A DNA stretch of 64,000 bases from Pelomyxa schiedti (Eukaryota > Protista > Evosea): contig JAHLWZ010000633.1 of assembly GCA_020536535.1 (NCBI GenBank), forward strand, positions 1 to 64,000, in the 5' to 3' direction. Shown here piece by piece: positions 1 to 51,355 of the stretch (position 1 is its first letter; each line of letters opens with the position of its first letter). A model generated the notes under the pieces. It worked only from the letters and a program-made list of their open reading frames with translations. It ran no database searches and was not told where the DNA came from. The translations under genes were made by a program, and so were the position numbers.

Positions 1-27
1 AAAAAAAATGACAAAAGAAAGAAGAAA

Positions 28-432
28 ATGAACGTGGTGGGTGACGGCGACGCCGACGCAAAACGCGACAGCCGCAGCGGTGGCTATGGCGACGCCTCTG
101 GCGGCGTCGGTGCCGACGCGCGTAGCGACAACGACAACCAGCAACAGCGAAATGAAAAGCAAATGAATACAAATCAAACTCAACACAAGCAACAAGAGCA
201 CGCGGGTAGCCAAACTACGCAGTTGCATTATAACTGGGGAAGTCCCTCTATCAAGAGGATACTGAAGGAGGTGGCGCAGTTGCAGGGCGACCCGCACACA
301 AAGGGCATCCTCCACGCCGCCCCCCTTGAGGTGTGTAAAAATGGGTTTTTTTTTTTTTTGTGTTGTTGTTTTTGTTTTTGTTTTTGTTTTTATTTGTTTT
401 TTTGTTGTTTTTTGTTTTGTTACTGTTACTGT

Positions 433-477
<45 letters not shown>

Positions 478-694
478 GTAACAGCTGATGTTGTTGCCGT
501 TGTTGTTGTTGTTGTTTCAGGAAGATACGCTAATTGCTTGTACAGGATAACATTTTTGAGTGGCACTTTACTTTGAGTGGTGCTGAGGATAGTGACTTTG
601 CGGGCGGACTGTACCATGGAAGAATTATCCTCCCACCAAACTATCCAATGTCACCTCCCTCTGTTGTCATGCTAACTGTAAGTCCTGCGTTTCT
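28..694 (+). CDS. UBE2J1: UBE2J1/Ubc6-type ubiquitin-conjugating enzyme, partial second copy truncated by the assembly gap
   Basis: Near-identical to 3917-4541; exon 1 SIKRILKE...AAPLE|gt, exon 2 DNIFEWHFTLSGAEDSDFAGGLYHGRIILPPNYPMSPP; runs into Ns at 695. Confidence 0.75.
346..516 (+). repeat. Intronic (TGY)n / T-rich microsatellite in UBE2J1 copy intron 1
   Basis: tgttgttgt...tgttgctgttgc repeats; source of the spurious poly-Cys and poly-Gln ORFs. Confidence 0.85.
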
Positions 695-3916: not shown

Positions 3917-5301
3917 ATGAACGTGGTGGGTGACGGCGACGCCGACGCAAAACGCGACAGCCGCAGCGGTGGCTATGGCGACGCCTCTGGCGGCGTCGGT
4001 GCCGACGCGCATAGCGACAAGGACAACCAGCAACAGCGAAATGAAGAGCAAATGAATCCAAATCCAAATCAACACAAGCAACAAGAGCACGCGGGTAGCC
4101 AAACGACGCAGTTGCATTATAACTGGGGAAGTCCCTCTATCAAGAGGATACTGAAGGAGGTGGCGCAGTTGCAGGGCGACCCGCACACAAAGGGAATCCT
4201 CCACGCCGCTCCCCTTGAGGTGTGTAAAATGGATTTGGTTTTTTTTTGTTGTTGTTTTTTGTTGTTGTTTTTTGTTGTTGTTTTTGTTTTGTTTGTTTTT
4301 TGTTTTGTTATTGTTGTTGCTGTTGCTGTGTAACAGCTGATGTTGTTGCCGTTATTGTTGTTTCAGGAAGATACGTCTAATTGCTTGTACAGGATAACAT
4401 TTTTGAGTGGCACTTTACTCTGAGTGGTGCTGAGGATAGTGACTTTGCGGGCGGACTGTACCATGGAAGAATTATCCTCCCACCAAACTATCCAATGTCA
4501 CCTCCCTCTGTTGTCATGCTAACTGTAAGTCCTGCGTTTCTGTCCTCTTCCTTTAAAGTCATCCCCTTTTAGCCCAGTGGCCGGTTTGAAGTTGGAGCTA
4601 AAATTTGCCTGAGTGCAACAGCATACCACCCAGAGCACTGGCAACCCAGCTGGGGTGTGTCCACTCTACTTGTGGCGTTAAGGTCCCACATGCTAACCCC
4701 TGCCGGTGGGGCCATTGGTGCACTGGATTTACCCTCTGAGGTTAGACGTTCATTTGCAACAAAATCCCGGACCTGGGCATGCCCTACATGCAAAGAGGAA
4801 AACCAACAGCTTCTCCCACCTCCTCCAACACCCGAGACACCCCCACTACCCCCCACAAATGGAGAAACAGCACCCGCAACCACAATTCATTGCACAACAA
4901 CATCTACAACACCGTCTACACCAATAAAGCCAGTCACACAACCACCTGAACGGCAATCAGCTGACAAATCACCACCGGAAATAAAAGCACCCATCCAACA
5001 ACCGCAACCACAATTCGTAGCACAACAAATACCCCCGGCAATGTTATTCCCAATCCCGCAGTATCTACCCCAATTCCCGAACCAAGTACTACAAAACGCG
5101 CTACTACAAGCACCACCACAACAGCATCAACCTCAGACACATCATCACCAACAAATTCGGACCACCTCACAACCACAAACACCAGCAACACAATCACAAT
5201 CCAAGACAGCCAGAAACTGTGTTGATACACTCATAGTCCTCATTTTTGCTTGTTTTGTGCTTTTGTTATTGAGGAAATTTGGCCTACTAATAAATGAATG
5301 A
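3917..5301 (+). CDS. UBE2J1: Ubiquitin-conjugating enzyme E2 J1 (Ubc6 family, tail-anchored ERAD E2)
   Basis: Exons 3917-4219, 4393-4524, 4573-5301 splice in frame; PSGRFEVGAKICLSATAYHPEHWQPSW with catalytic Cys; C-terminal TM TLIVLIFACFVLLLLRK. Confidence 0.93.
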
Positions 5302-5341
5302 AATTTGCAGAGGTTTTTTTTATTGTTTTCGACAATACATA

Positions 5342-5579
5342 CAGTGGTTTGCGAAAGTCGTGAAAAAATTCCGAAACAATTTTTGCATCTGGAAAATTGT
5401 GTGTGGTGGAGGTGGTGTGTTGGTCACGTGGAAGTCGTAGGCAACTGGCCAAACAAGGAAAGCTTCGATGCCTTCCACTATTTTTTGCGTTCCCCCCTTT
5501 CCAACACACCACCCAAAAAAAAATACAACAAAAATCAAAAAAAACAAAAAAATCGTGAGAGGAGATGAGCTGCTACCCC
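5342..5579 (+). repeat. Left terminal inverted repeat (238 bp), includes ATG at 5565
   Basis: Reverse complement of 8189-8426 with one mismatch noticed (ggaaaattGtg vs ggaaaattAtg). Confidence 0.96.
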
Positions 5580-6829
5580 CTTGCCAAACGCCGACGGGTA
5601 TTGAGCCATCAGAACGAATCAGTTGGTGTTGTAGCCCGCATTGAGGGAGTGAGTGAGAGCACAGTACGCCGGTACCGGCAGCAAGGTGTGGAGCAATTCA
5701 ACCACTGTGCATGCAAAAACCACGTACTAGGACCTCAATTAGAAGTACGAAAACGAACTGGGAGGCCTTTTTCTGTGAGTTTTTTGGCGTGTTATATGAT
5801 TGCCTGGACCTTACTCTTGTACCCAGTAGCGACATTAAAAGAGCTCCAGACAGTTGTGCTGGCGGCAACACACGAATTCTGCAAGTATATCCCTCTTTCT
5901 TCAGTAGTATCTCTTAAATATTGGGGTTTGTAGGCTTTGGCAAATCAGCCGTGCAATAAAGAAACTTGGCTTCCGCCTTCGTTTTACTACCCGAAAAATT
6001 ATTGGAGAGAGAAATGAGGTTCGTTGCTGCTGGATACATTTGTCCTACTAATGCCCTGATAGGCACAACGACGGGCCTGGTTTACCAATACTCTTACTGA
6101 GAGTCCTCATGGGTTTGTGTCCATTTCCTAACTCTGTATTCTAATATTACCCTAGTATTTTTTGTGTACCAGTTGAGGTATTGCTCGATCTAGATGAAAT
6201 GGGGTGCACCCTGTTGGATACAGCAAGACGCAGAGGGCACTCCTTGCCTGGTCAACCTGTTCGCACCCATCATGTATGTTTCACCATCCCTCTTTGCAAT
6301 TCTCTTAAACTTGCACTAATAATAACTTAGCCACCACAATCAAAACACCTCACTTTAATAATGGGTGCCGATGTTAATGTTGGGTCTTTGGGTTGTTTCG
6401 TGTTTCCAGGAACACTCAACACATCACTATTCTATGTTTGGCTTGCTGTAGTATTACTCCCGCAAATACGTGGCCAAAAACGCATTTTATTGATGGATAA
6501 TCACAAGGCACACCTTAACCCTTCCATCTTTGCGTTAGTTTCACAGGAAGGTCACCTTCTGGTACCGCGGTATGTCTTTTCTTTTTTATTAGGCCTCAAC
6601 CCTTTTTAGGCCAGTAGCCTCACCTGATCTAGCCTGGATTGAGCTTTGCTTTGCCGAAGTCAAGAGGCGCCTCCGCGAGTCACCTGGTCAAATAACGGAA
6701 CAGAATCTTGCACAACATATTTACAAGGCTGCTTTTGCAATTGATGGGCCACTGGTACAGAAATTTGCGTCTGCTTGCCACTACTATGTTCCTGGTCTTC
6801 CATACACGCCATACACAAACCCATTATAA
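5565..6829 (+). CDS. DD34E transposase (Tc1/IS630 family), ~343 aa, 5 introns
   Basis: Exons 5565-5884, 5934-6018, 6063-6112, 6156-6273, 6331-6569, 6610-6829 give an open frame: HTH (GVSESTVRRY; QISRAIKKLGF), LLDLDEMG, RRGHSLPG, LLMDNHKAH...PVASPDLAWIE with 34 residues between the second D and E. Confidence 0.93.
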
Positions 6830-6864
6830 AACAAAAAATAAAAAAAAATTTTTTTTTTTTTAGT

Positions 6865-8203
6865 TTAGGAACTTTGTGGTGAGGGTGCTGTGCCACTATC
6901 GAGAAGTAGTTCTTGTCTCAGTTGTTCTTGTATTAATTTTACAGCCTTTGGGTAGTCCCGCTTGAGTGCTTCTTCAACTTCAGCATCGTCGTACTGGTCA
7001 ATAAACCTCTGGTAATCATGAACCACAGAAAACATGGCATGAAATAGCACAGCATTTTCAGCACCAGCAATTTTTCTCAGTTTTTGGATTAGAACTACCA
7101 TAGCGTGAGGTGTGGGTAGAGTAAATGAGAAGGTACCTTTGGTTGTTTTTATTGGGTCCGGAGGTGCTTGGTCAGTACATAATCGTTTAGCCGGGTTTTT
7201 GTCTGTCACAGGTACAGCTGGTGGCACTCGTTTTGGAAGAGAACTGACAAAATCAGCAGTTGATTGCCCACATTGACCTGATCTTCCTCCTGTAGTGGTT
7301 GAGTGAAAAGGAATTATTAAAAAGATTTACTTAGATTCATCTGTACACTCTCAGTAAGTGCAGACATGGCCAAAGGGTTGCTTGCCACACACTCAGCCAA
7401 AGCATTATGTAGTTCTGGGTTTTCACTGAGGCCGGCTAGATCCTGCTTGGCCCCTTGCTTTGAGAGCTTGAACTGAAGACTTCTATTTAATTCGGCTGCC
7501 TTTGAGGCAGGCCATTCTTTTTCAGTAGCCTCAGGGTAGGCTGCGCATTTACATGAACAGAACCTGTACAATGTGAAGGACAAAAATATAAGCAACAGTT
7601 ATTACGTACTGGCACACTGTGCAGTGTTGTCGTGAGCATCCTTGGCATGTTCCATCATCAGCAGGATCGCAGCCACCACACCCACAGCCACACAAGTCCC
7701 CAGCATTAATTAATCGACGGCAGTCATCGCAAGCTGAAAGTAAGCAGCCGAACAACATAATTGAATACAGTGCTACTTACCTCCACAAGGATCTGGAAAG
7801 AGTCCTCGGCACCTACACTTGCACATCAACCTATCATAGACGCTTCCAGTTTGCCGGTTCTGCCAATTGTTAGCAAGAACAAGTAAAGAATATTCATTCA
7901 ACATATTCTCACCTGAGTCTGGTCTTTTCCTTTTCCTTTTCCTCTGGAGGATTCTTTCTTTACCCGCAACTCTGTAGGATGCCCACAGCCATAGCACGCA
8001 ATGACCCAGGTCTGGTGGCACAGTTGTTGTGGTTGTGGTTGTAGCTGTTGTGAGTGTGGTGCCGGCATTTGCCACTGTTGTGCTGGCCGTGATACTTGTT
8101 GCTGTGTAAGAAGTGGAGGTGGTGGTGGTAGTGTGATGCCCAGTCCATTCAAGTCCCTGTTTGCAATCGCACAGTCACTATTTACCCTGGGGTAGCAGCT
8201 CAT
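6865..8203 (-). CDS. Transposon-borne Cys-rich protein of unknown function (~370-383 aa)
   Basis: Exons 8203-7913, 7859-7781, 7733-7610, 7563-7331, 7289-6865 (GT-AG, phases compatible; optional 42-nt in-frame intron in the last); contains CKCRC-x7-CGACDDC-x9-CGCGCGGC-x7-CQGC-x4-CTVCQFCSCKC. Confidence 0.85.
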
Positions 8204-8426
8204 CTCCTCTCACGATTTTTTTGTTTTTTTTGATTTTTGTTGTATTTTTTTTTGGGTGGTGTGTTGGAAAGGGGGGAACGCAAAAAATAGTGGAAGGCAT
8301 CGAAGCTTTCCTTGTTTGGCCAGTTGCCTACGACTTCCACGTGACCAACACACCACCTCCACCACACATAATTTTCCAGATGCAAAAATTGTTTCGGAAT
8401 TTTTTCACGACTTTCGCAAACCACTG
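8189..8426 (-). repeat. Right terminal inverted repeat (238 bp), includes ATG at 8203 on the minus strand
   Basis: Reverse complement of 5342-5579. Confidence 0.96.
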
Positions 8427-8505
8427 TATTTACCCATTTGTTCCTTTTTGCTTAACAATAAACACACTTCATTTTGTTTTCATTCAACACCTACTGCTCT
8501 TTACA

Positions 8506-12419: not shown

Positions 12420-13010
12420 ATGGCTGGCCGCGCACGAAGTCCCCTGCTCGAGGACCGCGAACGAGACAGAGACCGGGACCGAGACAGGGACCGCGACCGT
12501 GCCCGGGAGCGAGATCGTGAGCGCGACCGCGAGCGCGACAGGGACCGCGAGCGAAGAGACAGGAGCCGGGAGCGGGAGCGAGACCGGGACCGCGAGCGCG
12601 ATCGTGATAGGGACAGGGACCGAGACAGGGAAAGGGAGCGAGACCGCTCCTCCAGCGCAGCGGCCAGGGCCCGTAGCGGCGCCGCGTCACCCCCGCTCCT
12701 TTTCCCCTTGCCCCCCACCCCCGGCTTCTTCGCGCCCGCCACGGCGATGGCGATGGCGATGGCACCCCAGACGCCTATGTCCCCCCCCATGGCCGCTGCT
12801 CCCGCAGTCCCAGCCAGTGGTGCCACCCCCAATCTCATAATCCCAACCACCCCCAACAACAACGCGCGTGGCGTAGTGCCTCCTCCCCCAGTTCCCCCGC
12901 CTCCGCCTCCCCCTGGCCCCGCGCCTCCCCCGCCGTCGCCGGCGCCCGCTCCGGCAGCCGCGGCGTCAACGCTCACAACTGCACCCACACCCGTGGTGCC
13001 CGCGGCCCCG

Positions 13011-13042
<32 letters not shown>

Positions 13043-16000
13043 TTTTTTTTTTTGCTTAGTCTTTTAAAGTTGTTTCATATTCCAGTGAACCTGATGATGA
13101 TCTCAGTTCTGTATCCAAAGACAAACCTCAATTACACTTCCAAGTACGTTCGATCCTAGAGATTTTCTTTACCCTGGAAATTAGCTATCTGTGAGTGGAG
13201 TTGGAATGGAAATAGTAACTTCTACCAAACGGCAACCAATTCTTAAACCTGTGGACCTCTCTGCCGAGGTATTCTTTCTTTAGGAATTTTCTTTCCGAGT
13301 TGGTAATCTTATTTCAGCTTCTCGTAAATGACTGGCAAATGCTTCTTGCAGCTGTAAAATCCAAGTTTAAACTTGTATTTTCAACTACAACTTTAATCCA
13401 CCTAATTTTGGAAGACGCCAGAAATGGATGCCATCTCTTTAGAGGGGACAGTGAGATCGTCACCTATTGAGGTCCAACTTTCTCAACTAAGGTATAACTT
13501 CTACACCGCATGAACACTTCTTTCTCACATTTCTCAGTTTCTGTTGGGGAGTTAACTTGGTGGAATTCTTTGATTGGCTTTTGAGGCTTGTAAAGTCGAA
13601 AAAAAAGCCAAAGTCACTAGCACCCTCTCTGCAACAATCTCTAGTTTTAGCACCTCCAAAACCTACCATCTTTGCAAGGATTCCCTCTATAAAGCGTGTC
13701 CCTTGTTCAATAACAATATAAAAAAATAACAAAAGCCAAATACAGGACAGATATCAAGCTGGAAGTTGGTCAAGCAACAGCAACTGTACAACTTACTCTT
13801 CGTGCACTCACTAAATGCCTAGGTGTGGTTGTACACCGAATGACCGTTTTTAACACTTCAAAGAACATTTGAGTGCATTATCAACTGAGAAACAAGATCT
13901 CAATTCCTTAATTGCTCTCCTTCCTATTCTCCTCAATGAAGATGGTTTTCTTCACATAATAAACTTCTCCCTCACCTTCTCAATAGACAGGTCTGCTGTG
14001 GAATTTGTACTTGCCACGTTCACACTCCACCATATTGATGGTAGTCTAGGCGTTCAACCAATAGATTACCAGCCACCATTTATTGAGGCATCATTTTCTG
14101 TTAAAAATGTCCAGGTATACTTCCCATTTGGCACCATGGATGTAAATCGTTACAGTTCATTCTATATCCATTCCCTTTGAATCCTATGGGGGTAATGCTA
14201 CAAACAACCGTGGGGGGTGAAGTCGGCGCACTTGATGCAGCAGCAGTAGCACTGCCTTCGAGCGTCTCATTCAGGTTCAGCTATTATCTCTACAGGAAAA
14301 ACGAGTACCCACATTTGCGCAGACATGAAATCTCTAGCACTCCGAATCCTAGTAATCCCAATGACATCGATACTGTGCATAAAACACATCTGTATATAAA
14401 TGGAACGCAGTTACAACTGAGTGGCATGGTAGGCAGTTCTGTGCTGAAGTCTGCAAATTCCTTGCGGCGCATTTTTATGCTAGTTTTGGCTGGACAGAGA
14501 GTACGACATGCAGCAATGCGCAAAAGGGCAACTGGAAAGCAAAAAAAGAAATCCAAGAAAGGTATATTCCAATCCAAACCCTTTCGAAAGCCACTCATGA
14601 AACCAAGAGGTCACACTTGAAATTGGTGATTTCTTATTTGCATTGAATGAAATCCTTGCCCAAGATTTTACCTCAAGAATGATTGCTTTGGGTAAATACC
14701 GAGAGCCCAAGTAAATTGATCACCAATTCTAGATTCAAGCACTGCTTCTCTACTCCAGAGCAGTCTCGAGGCATCTCAGCAAATGGGTTTCTTTCATGTA
14801 CTGGGGGGACTCAGCTAACCTACAACAGAAATCCCTGCAAACAATGTCAAAATCCGAGTCATGACAAAAACGCTGGGAGCTCTCAAAGCGTCAAAGTTAC
14901 TTTTTACTGGGGAACTGGATCACCTAAAAACTACGTACATGTAAGTTTTCCTGTGTTTTCCATCTTTCCTGCTTCCCGTCTGTTTCAGAAAGGAAAATGA
15001 AAGTCAGAAAATAAGGATCACACAACTCGAGCGTGACCTTGATGAAATGAAGAATCAACTCATCGCATCAAAGATGTCTGATGTGGATACACAATGCAAA
15101 AACGAAGAGAATAAAAGAAAGGTAACACTGTCGTCACTGCAACTGCTTATCAGGGGAAAAAGATACACCAAATCGATAAAGAATTGCAAGTAGCCAGGCT
15201 GGAAGTCACCAAAAGGGATGAGGAAATTAAGCGACTAAATGCCATACTGTCACATAATAACCCTGCCAGTCTTCTGAAAGCGACTAATGACTCTCTAAGA
15301 CTTATTGCGGACAAGTTAATTTCCCGCTTCTACACTTTGAACTTTACAAATAAAACAGAACTGAATCCGAGAAGAAGGATATCACCTCTAGACTAGAGGC
15401 ACAAACAGCAAGAACAGCAGCCGCTGTAAGCCCATTTCCACATATCCTCCCTTTACTTCTTGAGGGGGAAAAAAAAATCAATCCTTCTACAGGAGAAGAG
15501 AGCGAGTAATGCAGATGCAACTATCTGCCAGTTGAACATTCTTCTTGCTGACAGAGATGCAGAAATTAAAGAAGTTTGTTCTTCCTTCCATTCCTTTCAA
15601 TCTTCTAAATCCCCACTCCCAGTTACGAATACTTCTGGACCATGCCAAACGAACTGCTGAACTTGCATCAGTGAGTGCTTCCACCCTTAAAAAACCCCTA
15701 CAATTCTAGATAACAACAAATTGCAATTGCAATCCTAATTAAAAATGCAGGCCAAACCCGAACCACCCCCAGCCACCACCAACCCCACATCAATTCCCTC
15801 TGAAGAAAAACCCACATTAGCAACACCCACCAAATTACCCACATCCACCCACACAGCAACTGCAAATTTATCCAAAAGTGCCAGTGCATCTTCTCTACCC
15901 CCGGCTACATCAACACCCCTGGCACCAACTACAAACCCAACTATAAGCAATGCATCACTCCGGAAATCTGTGGATTATACCAGGGGTTCCTCATCATCTT

Positions 16001-20041: not shown

Positions 20042-21954
20042 TTATTGTCCATCATCTGGTTGATAAAATTCCGGAATCCGCATCTTTTGGAATTCTTCCA
20101 AGTCATTCACAGTTCCTTGAAGATCGTTGACTGAGTTTCTCTCACTATAAACCATCTAGAGACACACCAGTCGGCGAGGGTCCTGGGCCCGCACCTCGTC
20201 AATTGTGGGACTCCTGGGTCTGTTTCCTGTGGTACTGTACATGAATGGTAGAAAGCCGACCCATCCTAGGTCCACCTTTGGGATCATGTTTCTTGCAAGA
20301 CACACATGACAAGAAACAACTTCAAGTGATTGATGGAGCACCAACCCATTGTACCTGGTTTGACTCTCCAAGCAACCTCTCTTGTGGCGATGAAGGTGTC
20401 AATTTGCCCCCAGAAGCCACCTTTCTTGTGAACGTCATCAATTACAAAAGGGATGTTGTACAAAAAAAAAAACAAAAAGGCATGTTGTTATCTACTTCGA
20501 GTTGAAGATAGAGGGAAAGGTGTCAGAGCAGCAAGGATGGAGAAGAAAAGGAGGCCCGCAGTGGCATTGGTGTGTTGTGAGAGTCATCAGTTGAGAGTGG
20601 TTGGACTTGGTGGGAGACTGCAGTTGTTGGGGATGTGTTGGGCACGACCGCTGTTGCCGTGGCTGTGGTGCTTGTTGAATTGATGAAAGAAGCTGGTGCA
20701 AATGCAAAAAAGTCTTCATCAGCAGGGAAGAAGCCACCTCCACCAGGCGGAGACGAAACGGTCACCGCTGGCGCGTGAGTCTCAGTAAGATCGAGTGCAC
20801 TTGGTTGAGGTTCCCCATGGTATTCAATATGATTCTGGGGGTTATTTATTTCCTTTTTGTTTGATAGGCACACAGACCTTTCTTCGAGATGGAATCGCTC
20901 GTGTTGCACTCGTTGTGAATGGATTGATGTCCATACTACTGTCATTGGAGGTTGTGGGTTGTTGGTGTATCGGAGTGATGTGCGTGAAGTCATTCATAAG
21001 AATGGTGGATATCGGAACTGTCCCACATGGAGATGAAGAAAGTGCCCCATGTCCAACACTGCCAACAACACACGGTGTAATATTATTAGCAGCTCCCCCT
21101 TCTTCTCTAATGTGATGGTGATCTATTATTTCATTTTTTTAGTTTTCTTTCTTGTGCTTTTGTCGTAGGTACATACTTGTTGCAGAGGGGTGTGCAATTG
21201 GTTGTTGTGTCGAGCTATGCTACGCAATGAAGTTAAATTCGTGTCCGAACTTAAAACAATGAAAGCCATACAGGTGTAGGATATACAGTGTGATTAGTGG
21301 TAGGTCTTGGCTGTGAGACAGCTGGGCCATTCGAATGGGAACCGTGTGAGAGTGAGGAACTCACTGCAGGTGCAGAAGTTCCTAAGATTTTCGAGGAGCT
21401 TGACTTTGCTTGCAGCGACAACATTGTATGAGTCCATTGTTGACGCTGTTCTACGCTCACACATTTGAATCTGGATAAAGTTTAAGATTGGCTTGCAATT
21501 AATAGGTGGCCCCACTTGTAATTCGATTGATCGCATATTACAATGAATGACTTCGTACTCTTTGAAGATTTCGCAGGTTTTACAGTGATTTTGGAGAGTT
21601 CAAGGGCAACACTAGGCTGAGCGTCCTTTTTCGGGAGTTGAGCCAAAGGGGGGGGGGTAAAAACACCATAACGTACTTGGTAGTCTCTAAACCAAGCAAA
21701 ATAATGTGGGTACAATGCACACCACTTGGGACTGTAAGTCGCAAGTGTCTTATTTATCAAATGAGTCACGGCAATAAAACAACATCGAAACCTTTTTATG
21801 CAACCAACCAATCAATACAGGTAGCTCTTTCTTCTTGGGTGCAGGCTCTTCCGCGGATCTCACCTCTGTAGTATTTTTTTTTTTATTATTATTATTTAAT
21901 ATTAGTTTAGCTTGTTTGGCACAAACGAATCGACGAGTAGGGGATTGACTTCAT
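20042..21954 (-). CDS. PH-domain protein with low-complexity C-terminal region
   Basis: Spliced N-terminus LIGWLHKKTLATYSPKWCALYPHYFAWFRDYQDAQPSVALELSKITV...SFIVICDQSNYKFKCVSVEQRQQWTHTM fits PH consensus; 3' end approximate. Confidence 0.72.
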
Positions 21955-50400: not shown

Positions 50401-51355
50401 TTTTGTAAATTTCTTCTTTACTTCTGAAATGTTATCAATCCCCAGTACAGAGCTGCATTAAAGAACACAGAATCATTTGAACAAAGCATGCTTCGGAGGG
50501 GATTGAGTACCGTTGAGGGTTTTATTCACTGCCCAAAGTGTAACTATGGAGGTTTTGCTGTTTGTGATGACGCCATATGTAATGAGTGTGGACTTCATTT
50601 TTGTGTTAAATGTTTATTGGAGCATCACCCTGGTGCCTCGTATGCCTCTTTTTCCCAAAACCTCAGACCCTGCTTAAAAGCCTTAGGTGTAATGACATGA
50701 CTAAAATTCTACTTGTTGATCAATTGGAAAGGCGGAAAGAAAAGAGATTAACAGAGGAAGGCACTCTCTTAAATAAGGTTAGTTCTTTTTCTCCCACTCT
50801 TTTCTAGAATCCTTATTCCAGAATCGGTAATAAATTCCACCCGTGGTCGACACAATAAAGTGGATGAACACAAATGCCCGGCCATGCCCTCAATGCAAAG
50901 CCATGATCCAGAAAGACGGCGGCTGCAGTCACATGACCTGCTCCCACTGCAAGCACCAATTCTGCTGGCTATGTATGCTGCCGTACATCAGCCGGCTCAC
51001 CGGCGACCAAGTTGATCCCTGCGAGAGGATTCCCGCGAAGCTTCAGTTCTCCCTGCACTACTTCACCCCAGAGCCCCAGGTGTACCTAGCCATCAGCGGC
51101 TCCATCGCCAAGCTGGGGTTATGGGACCCCTCGAAAGCTGTCCCGATGACCCGGCAGGCCTCGGGATGGTGGACAGTCACACTGGACCTCATGGTGGGAT
51201 CCACATTCTACTGGAAGTTTGTGGTGTGCAATTCAGCCGATCGCAAAGCCTTGAGGTGGGAGGGTACCCCAAACCGGCACTGGAGGGTGATATTCCAGGA
51301 TGCCATTTACACGGCCCAGTGGGAATCAACAAAGTACGTGCAACACCGACCATGA
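47401..51355 (+). CDS. Ankyrin-repeat RBR (RING1-IBR-RING2) E3 ubiquitin ligase with C-terminal CBM20 carbohydrate-binding module
   Basis: [12 protein letters not shown] ankyrin; CGICLE...RCGHA|FCRDCL...CP..GC (RING1); CPKC...[17 protein letters not shown] (IBR); [30 protein letters not shown] (RING2); [19 protein letters not shown]...WWT...WKFVV...RWEGTPNR (CBM20) in the same exon as RING2. Confidence 0.9.

Follow-up and report, generated by a model that had tools for sequence, protein, structure and literature searches.

A conserved Cys-rich gene faces the transposase in a clade of IS630/Tc1-type transposons of Pelomyxa schiedti

Multi-gene transposons and the Pelomyxa element

Tc1/mariner elements are the textbook one-protein transposons, and Tc1/IS630 transposases work alone as a rule. 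The multi-gene exceptions known to us in the IS630/Tc1/mariner (ITm) superfamily are the TBE and Tec elements of ciliates, whose accessory proteins are still unexplained. TBE of Oxytricha, a Tc1/mariner element, encodes a 42 kD transposase, a 22 kD ORF and a 57 kD zinc-finger/kinase ORF (PMC4724952, PMC7325037) and carries telomere-like sequence at the tips of TIRs of about 80 bp (PMC7325037). Maize MuDR has two convergent genes, mudrA and mudrB, and TIRs of about 215 bp that hold the promoters; both genes are alternatively spliced (PMC3440606). VANC, encoded by Arabidopsis VANDAL elements, depends on internal tandem motifs (PMC6719617).

We analysed a window of 64,000 nucleotides from the anaerobic amoeba Pelomyxa schiedti (assembly GCA_020536535.1, contig JAHLWZ010000633.1, positions 1 to 64,000) and found that a 3,085-bp transposon at 5342-8426 is host to both a transposase gene and a Cys-rich gene. 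Judged by its sequence the element is a member of the ITm superfamily, with a TA target-site duplication, CA..TG TIRs, a DD34E triad and a DDE_3 match. It differs from other IS630/Tc1/mariner elements in its second conserved gene, its six transposase introns and its long TIRs that include the start codons.

Like TBE, the window element combines a DD34E transposase of the ITm type with accessory coding sequence under purifying selection, and the TBE zinc-finger ORF is the fastest-diverging gene of its element, as is the Cys-rich partner in the Pelomyxa elements. However, the window element has two genes rather than three, no kinase domain, no telomeric ends and TIRs of 238 bp; there is no sequence match to TBE, and the host is an amoeba, not a ciliate. 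A preliminary description of the locus, made from the letters alone, had pointed to both the TBE zinc-finger protein and the CxC clusters that accompany KDZ transposons. Neither kinship was borne out: the Cys-rich protein has no kinase or other Pfam domain, none of eight members matched a Pfam CxC family at E<=1, and the transposase is of the DDE_3 type. The KDZ CxC clusters and the piggyBac/PiggyMac CRD (PMC8086355) do share with the partner a Cys-dense cluster associated with a DNA transposon and the CxxC-x4-CxxC spacing, but the Pelomyxa partner is a separate gene and not a transposase domain, lacks a Pfam match and is spaced differently (CxxCxH, CxCxGHxxxPC and a closing CxxCxxCxCxC). The CxxC-x4-C spacing alone is generic, since IBR/RING2-type (RBR ligase-like) Cys motifs at about 50500-51000 (+) of the window have it too.

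The likeness to MuDR lies in the convergent genes, the long TIRs, which in the Pelomyxa element are predicted to hold the promoters, the variant splicing of both transcripts and a second protein that, as with MURB, is of unknown biochemistry. MuDR belongs to the Mutator superfamily with a MULE transposase and an 8-11-bp TSD, whereas the Pelomyxa element has a TA TSD and DDE_3, and no sequence in common was detected between MURB and the partner. The two systems have the same layout and are of independent origin. With VANC (PMC6719617) the partner shares its status as a fast-diverging accessory protein encoded by the element, a host with C5 methyltransferases and a proposed mode of action; it has no sequence or fold match to VANC, and neither internal tandem motifs of the VANC kind nor other internal repeated motifs are evident in the Pelomyxa elements. 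Our literature search, which took in few subscription journals and was made without Repbase, returned no paper on P. schiedti transposons or on such a two-gene ITm element. The system described here is a small (3.1 kb), recently mobile ITm element outside the ciliates with a single conserved Cys-rich partner, whose domain is undescribed.

The element, its copies and its two genes

The 238-bp TIRs of the window element differ by one mismatch and their ends read CAGTGG... The start codons of the two genes occupy mirror positions within them, and therefore the first five residues are shared by both proteins (Table 1). A copy on contig C511 is 99.9% identical (1-2 bases differ), with other flanks and its own TA duplication. 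TA duplications are present in the window, C511, C968, C449 and C887 copies. The window element is mobile as one unit, as seen from the 99.9% copies in different flanks with TA duplications. A further copy (C714:76157-79012) is 94% identical, and fragments of the element are also present in the genome. In the C714 copy, 221 bp of the right TIR, among them the partner start codon, are missing, and the Cys-rich gene is interrupted by a stop in exon 3 and by a frameshift in exon 6. The two flanks of this copy repeat each other in inverted orientation, which may be an artefact of the assembly. Sequence variants of this copy occur in RNA run X3, which indicates that the C714 subfamily is transcribed. 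On C887 (L053:3722-4472) a MITE-like relative of 751 bp has TIRs of 150 bp and is flanked by a TA duplication; it has no coding similarity, and its ends are 88% like the first 32 bp of the window element.

The element lies between two convergent host genes that are otherwise about 120 bp apart. It is inserted 40 bp past the stop codon of the left one (3917-5301, +), an E2 gene of the Ubc6/UBE2J-like type whose product has a hydrophobic tail at its C-terminus. A second copy of the 5' part of the E2 gene, at 1-694 (+), is 91% identical and has a UQ_con match; this partial duplicate within the window holds no empty insertion site. Elsewhere in the window (12420-13067, +) a G+C-rich ORF encodes a long run of Arg-Asp/Glu dipeptides and, after it, a Pro-rich tract, with no Pfam match.

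Table 1. Features of the transposon and of its two genes in the window, with the evidence for each
Feature	Position	Strand	Evidence or remark
TA target-site duplication, left	5340..5341	.	C511, C1607 and C2554 copies have different flanks, TA too
Left TIR, 238 bp, starts CAGTGG	5342..5579	+	holds transposase start codon (5565) and 5 codons
IS630/Tc1-type DD34E transposase, 328 aa, seven exons	5565..6829	+	DDE_3, RNA, frame
Transposase exons	5565-5685, 5731-5884, 5934-6018, 6063-6112, 6156-6273, 6331-6569, 6610-6829	+	RNA, frame
Cryptic intron in transposase coding sequence	5775..5826	+	joint 5774-5827, runs X1 and X3
Non-productive splice, acceptor 6409 rather than 6330	6274..6409	+	joint 6273-6410, all three RNA runs
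A-run/T-run spacer, 35 bp, between converging stop codons	6830..6864	.	sequence; cDNA contig ends
Exon 6: C-terminal helical domain, about aa 294-365	6865..7094	-	sequence, model
Intron 5, 42 nt, in frame, CT..AC	7095..7136	-	joint 7094-7137, three RNA runs
Exon 5: variable linker, NLS-like motif aa 277-283	7137..7289	-	sequence
Intron 4, 41 nt	7290-7330	-	spliced in RNA
Exon 4: CxCxC, conserved Trp (other families H-x-x-W), long helix	7331..7563	-	sequence
Intron 3, 46 nt	7564-7609	-	spliced in RNA
Exon 3: CxxC ... CxC ... CxxC-x4-CxxC	7610..7733	-	sequence
Intron 2, 47 nt, phase 1	7734..7780	-	conserved in six families; in-frame TAG at 7775-7773
Exon 2: CxCxG(H)xxxPC	7781..7859	-	sequence
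Intron 1, 53 nt	7860-7912	-	length arithmetic (88 window nt = 35 cDNA nt, all three runs)
Exon 1: start codon in right TIR, Q/P-rich N-terminus, CxxCxH, basic stretch	7913..8203	-	sequence
Right TIR, 238 bp	8189..8426	-	gives Cys-rich gene 5' region and first five codons
TA target-site duplication, right	8427..8428	.	sequence

When the transposase was searched exon by exon, DDE_3 (PF13358) was over the Pfam cut-off for the stretch 6331-6567, and there are 34 residues from the Asp of MDN to the Glu of WIE. Five of the six introns were seen in RNA. The remaining one, 6274-6330, is predicted from the frame and from conservation in six families, and its productive acceptor at 6330 is set by the frame, the Pfam match and the same intron in the six families. 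The transposase has no obvious loss of its DNA-binding part, since it is full length with its own N-terminal region, and its dN/dS against the C714 copy is 0.12. Searching viral and metagenome contigs with the transposase exons, together with word searches, returned no close relative outside Pelomyxa.

The Cys-rich gene lies on the minus strand at 8203-6865. The preliminary description had rebuilt it from four GT-AG introns of compatible phase as a protein of about 380 aa. These four introns and the frame stood, giving 383 stop-free codons, and the motifs that it named were all found in place on the minus strand; its count of about 17 Cys in about 65 residues agrees with our 17 within 62 (aa 110-171). 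What it had missed is the in-frame intron 5. Because this intron is spliced, the protein has 369 aa and not 383 codons, and the corrected model has six exons, whose translations are all found exactly in the deposited 369-aa proteins Pelo_6453/Pelo_8042 of P. schiedti. Introns 1-4 have a G+C content of 29-38%. The Cys core (aa 126-200) is acidic-neutral, with a pI of 5.7.

We searched for relatives with the spliced window model exon by exon and with the deposited P. schiedti records as whole-protein queries. Neither the single exons nor the deposited full-length members of the Cys-rich family matched Pfam, the PDB returned chance matches only by sequence and profile, a search of the ESM Atlas by features gave nothing, and word searches found P. 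schiedti proteins only. With a Cys-domain profile, HMMER returned 7 matches among 1.84 billion representatives, of which 6 are P. schiedti proteins. The other match, to a repeat protein of clover (E=1e-4), was rejected because it has only CxxCxxxFC in common. At the sensitivity of that search, no relative outside Pelomyxa was found among the 1.84 billion proteins. The AlphaFold models (pLDDT 34 for P0002 and 53 for a paralog) are too weak to assign a fold. Foldseek on the models gave nothing at E<0.001, the atlas fold search stayed at TM<0.3 throughout, and the cross-brace zinc fingers (piggyBac CRD, FYVE, PHD, RING/IBR) gave no Pfam or PDB match. The best VIA match (Z 5.0) was RECQL5 KIX, a generic three-helix bundle, and in the models the C-terminus of the Cys-rich protein looks like such a bundle.

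Conservation, splicing and selection

Related families were located with one transposase exon as query (55-67% identity). We found that five further families (C968, C753, C449, C1578 and C572) carry a Cys-rich homolog convergent with the transposase in the same place. Their elements are 3.1-3.6 kb long with TA duplications, the homolog lies inside the TIRs wherever the ends are assembled, and the TIR sequence differs in each family. The transposases of the six families are 49-63% identical and the partners 17-39% outside the shared Cys. Intron 2 has the same position and phase in 6/6 families (41-49 nt, GT..AG), and intron 3 is likewise shared in position and phase. Common to the partners are about 16 conserved Cys in the pattern CxxCxH, basic stretch, CxCxG(H)xxxPC, CxxC, CxC, CxxC-x4-CxxC, CxCxC, (H)xxW and long helix. 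After the helix the families share a variable linker with an NLS-like motif and then a helical C-terminal domain; a K[KR]x[KR]-type motif precedes this domain in 5/6 deposited members. Every full-length element found holds both genes. A comparison of the transposase and partner phylogenies of the six families gave no co-phylogeny signal (Mantel p=0.55), on trees that are star-like and of low power.

The RNA data are three single-cell runs from one sample and one study, kept as contigs, which lose minor forms. Introns 3, 4 and 5 of the Cys-rich gene were seen as joints in cDNA and intron 1 by length arithmetic. Intron 2 was retained in the contigs of 3/3 runs (7608-7862 contiguous), with the other four introns removed in the same contigs; the retention describes the main form, and a spliced form may be present as well. 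When intron 2 is retained the frame ends after 125 aa, ahead of most of the Cys cluster. A non-standard genetic code was ruled out as a rescue, since 47 nt is a frameshift. We consider intron 2 to be real because its position and phase are common to six families, it is spliced in a paralog cDNA and the exons behind it are selected. The cDNA 5' adapter joins at 8207, four bases ahead of the start codon and inside the TIR, and the transposase cDNA contigs stop at 6816 and those of the Cys-rich gene at 6873-6884, without overlap.

The transposase is mainly mis-spliced too in the three runs. A 136-nt skip (6274-6409) loses coding sequence and shifts the frame before the second Asp, and the skipped part matches DDE_3; removal of the cryptic intron 5775-5826 brings a stop at the junction. 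Truncated forms are the main forms of both genes in the cells sequenced, and full-length products are not. No full-length mRNA of the window family's Cys-rich gene was found among the cDNA contigs of the three runs, which hold main forms only. The introns 7734-7780 and 6274-6330 have 0 substitutions in 104 nt against the C714 copy and the other introns 22 in 413 (p=0.012, post hoc); these two introns may be splicing-control sequences.

Compared with the C714 copy, the partner has a dN/dS of 0.32 over the whole gene (p=5e-5). In the same comparison pN/pS is 0.25 for exons 3-6 (p=3e-5) and 0.63 for exons 1-2 (p=0.4), where selection is weak. The partner pN/pS values of two other families are 0.30 and 0.24, neither significant alone. 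Since exons 3-6 lie behind the retained intron and are under purifying selection, the full-length protein must have been made and selected.

The Cys-rich gene is a dedicated, conserved, selected and transcribed accessory gene that moves with the transposon. We conclude that a clade of IS630/Tc1-type cut-and-paste transposons in Pelomyxa almost certainly has it as its fixed second gene. The word cargo, used in the preliminary description, understates this; the gene is a constant component of the family.

A diverged homolog, Pelo_13662 (C893, about 20050-21872, +), is transcribed and has a long Q-rich N-terminus. Three profile searches found no transposase exon on its 57-kb contig. Its cDNA has intron 2 spliced and a shifted intron 3 that deletes CxCxC. 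Pelo_13662 is a candidate for a domesticated copy or a non-autonomous element. Partner exons at C912:46847 and C242:47507 are also without a transposase match.

Possible roles of the partner

Several observations suggest that the host methylates these elements. Between two copies, transitions were found at 36 of 193 CpG sites and at 45 of 1121 other C/G sites (5-fold, p=2e-11), and the GpC control in this comparison was flat. CpG is depleted in all families (o/e 0.40-0.54 in the elements, 0.64 in the remaining window). Four genome loci (C902, C151, C829 and C1048) match the C5 DNA methyltransferase family over the cut-off, a match at family level. The CpG decay in the transposons together with the four loci suggests 5mC in Pelomyxa, and the elements are probably methylated at CpG by the host. 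These findings are a pointer to CpG-methylated transposons in an archamoeba.

We tentatively favour, at somewhat less than an even chance, a role of the partner as an element-specific DNA or chromatin factor, anti-silencing or activating, that would counter host silencing. We favour it because of the fast divergence on a fixed Cys scaffold, the family-specific TIRs and the signs of host methylation. The partner outpaces the transposase in divergence and each family has its own TIR, which fits family-specific recognition or an arms race. In the mechanism that we propose, the two TIRs would carry the same promoter region, a function suggested by the 5' cDNA end in the TIR, and the transposase and partner would be transcribed toward each other from matched TIR signals. 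Splicing may gate the expression of both proteins, with productive splicing at some stage, as selection on exons 3-6 suggests. The full-length partner would then enter the nucleus by its NLS-like motif. Its N-terminal cluster would bind zinc, as the conserved Cys/His pattern suggests, and fold with about 16 Cys plus His around 4-5 Zn, and its basic loop may bind DNA or chromatin of its own element with family specificity. The C-terminal three-helix domain could recruit or block a host factor, and the element would thereby stay expressed and mobile against host CpG-methylation silencing, a VANC-like role. Against this reading, no sequence, profile or fold match backs any role, and the acidic-neutral Cys core is not an obvious DNA-binding surface. 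The CpG decay speaks to probable methylation of the element and not to opposition to methylation by the partner. The missing VANC-type tandem motifs, the full-length mRNA not found for this family and the lack of a co-phylogeny signal also count against it. Should the partner prove to be an anti-silencing factor, we would know of no earlier one from the ITm superfamily. Doubtful as a whole is the full picture: a new zinc-cluster domain whose task in Tc1/IS630-type transposons would be family-specific anti-silencing (or that of an obligatory cofactor), expressed together with the transposase from mirrored TIR promoters under a stage-specific splicing switch. It would be a MuDR/VANC-like solution that arose independently in an amoeba, with one copy, Pelo_13662, possibly domesticated by now.

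A transposition cofactor or target-site tether, comparable to MURB or the Myb-like protein of Harbinger, is a rather unlikely alternative to the anti-silencing reading. The partner would bind the transposase and/or chromatin and be required for end synapsis or insertion to be efficient. Tc1/IS630 transposases as a rule need no such partner, and one would expect a protein that has to bind a conserved transposase to diverge less than this one does. Both genes are however present in every full-length element found, mirrored promoters would yield matched amounts of both proteins, and the gap between the convergent host genes that flank the window copy measures 120 bp. The layout equals that of MuDR, where mudrB is reported to be needed for integration (PMC3440606, PMC6446971). 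Cross-brace fingers of piggyBac-type transposases bind DNA or histone H3 (PMC8086355), and the CxxC-x4-CxxC core is reminiscent of them, but no cross-brace family was matched.

It is improbable that the partner, or its 125-aa intron-2-retained form, is a negative self-regulator of the TIR promoters or of productive splicing that limits copy number, like the truncated P-element product. The P element is also under splicing control. This reading would account for the dominance of truncated forms of both genes in the three runs, for the paralog cDNA that is also without CxCxC through shifted splice sites, and for the unsubstituted state of the two affected true introns noted above. Copy numbers are low, and there is a precedent (PMC6719617). 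However, the strongest selection acts on the exons behind the retained intron and exons 1-2 are weakly constrained, which argues that the truncated product is not what is conserved, and the mis-splicing, seen in one sample only, may be host-imposed or plain noise.

We give a poor chance to a protein that serves the host or cell (metal binding, an addiction module or domestication under way) and rides on the element. The diverged and transcribed Pelo_13662, with no transposase exon nearby in three profile searches, would fit such a role, but the C893 locus may be non-autonomous; every other intact homolog lies opposite a transposase inside TIRs, and the partner is a modular nuclear-type protein unlike metallothionein.

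That an ordinary host gene was captured once and is now decaying, the case named in the preliminary description as refuting its own view, or that the reading is a chance one of Cys-rich DNA, is very improbable: a full-length mRNA is not among the contigs seen and the C714 copy is interrupted by a stop and by a frameshift, but the six diverged families have the same layout, conserved introns and purifying selection, with no conventional host parent and no relative elsewhere.

The Cys-rich partner is absent from the other DDE_3 transposase clades of the genome (C1371, C185, C355, C1626, C229, C2783, C1557, C174, C792, C294 and C277), which are useful one-gene controls. Six natural variants with six different TIRs make a direct test of the role of an accessory gene in an ITm element possible.
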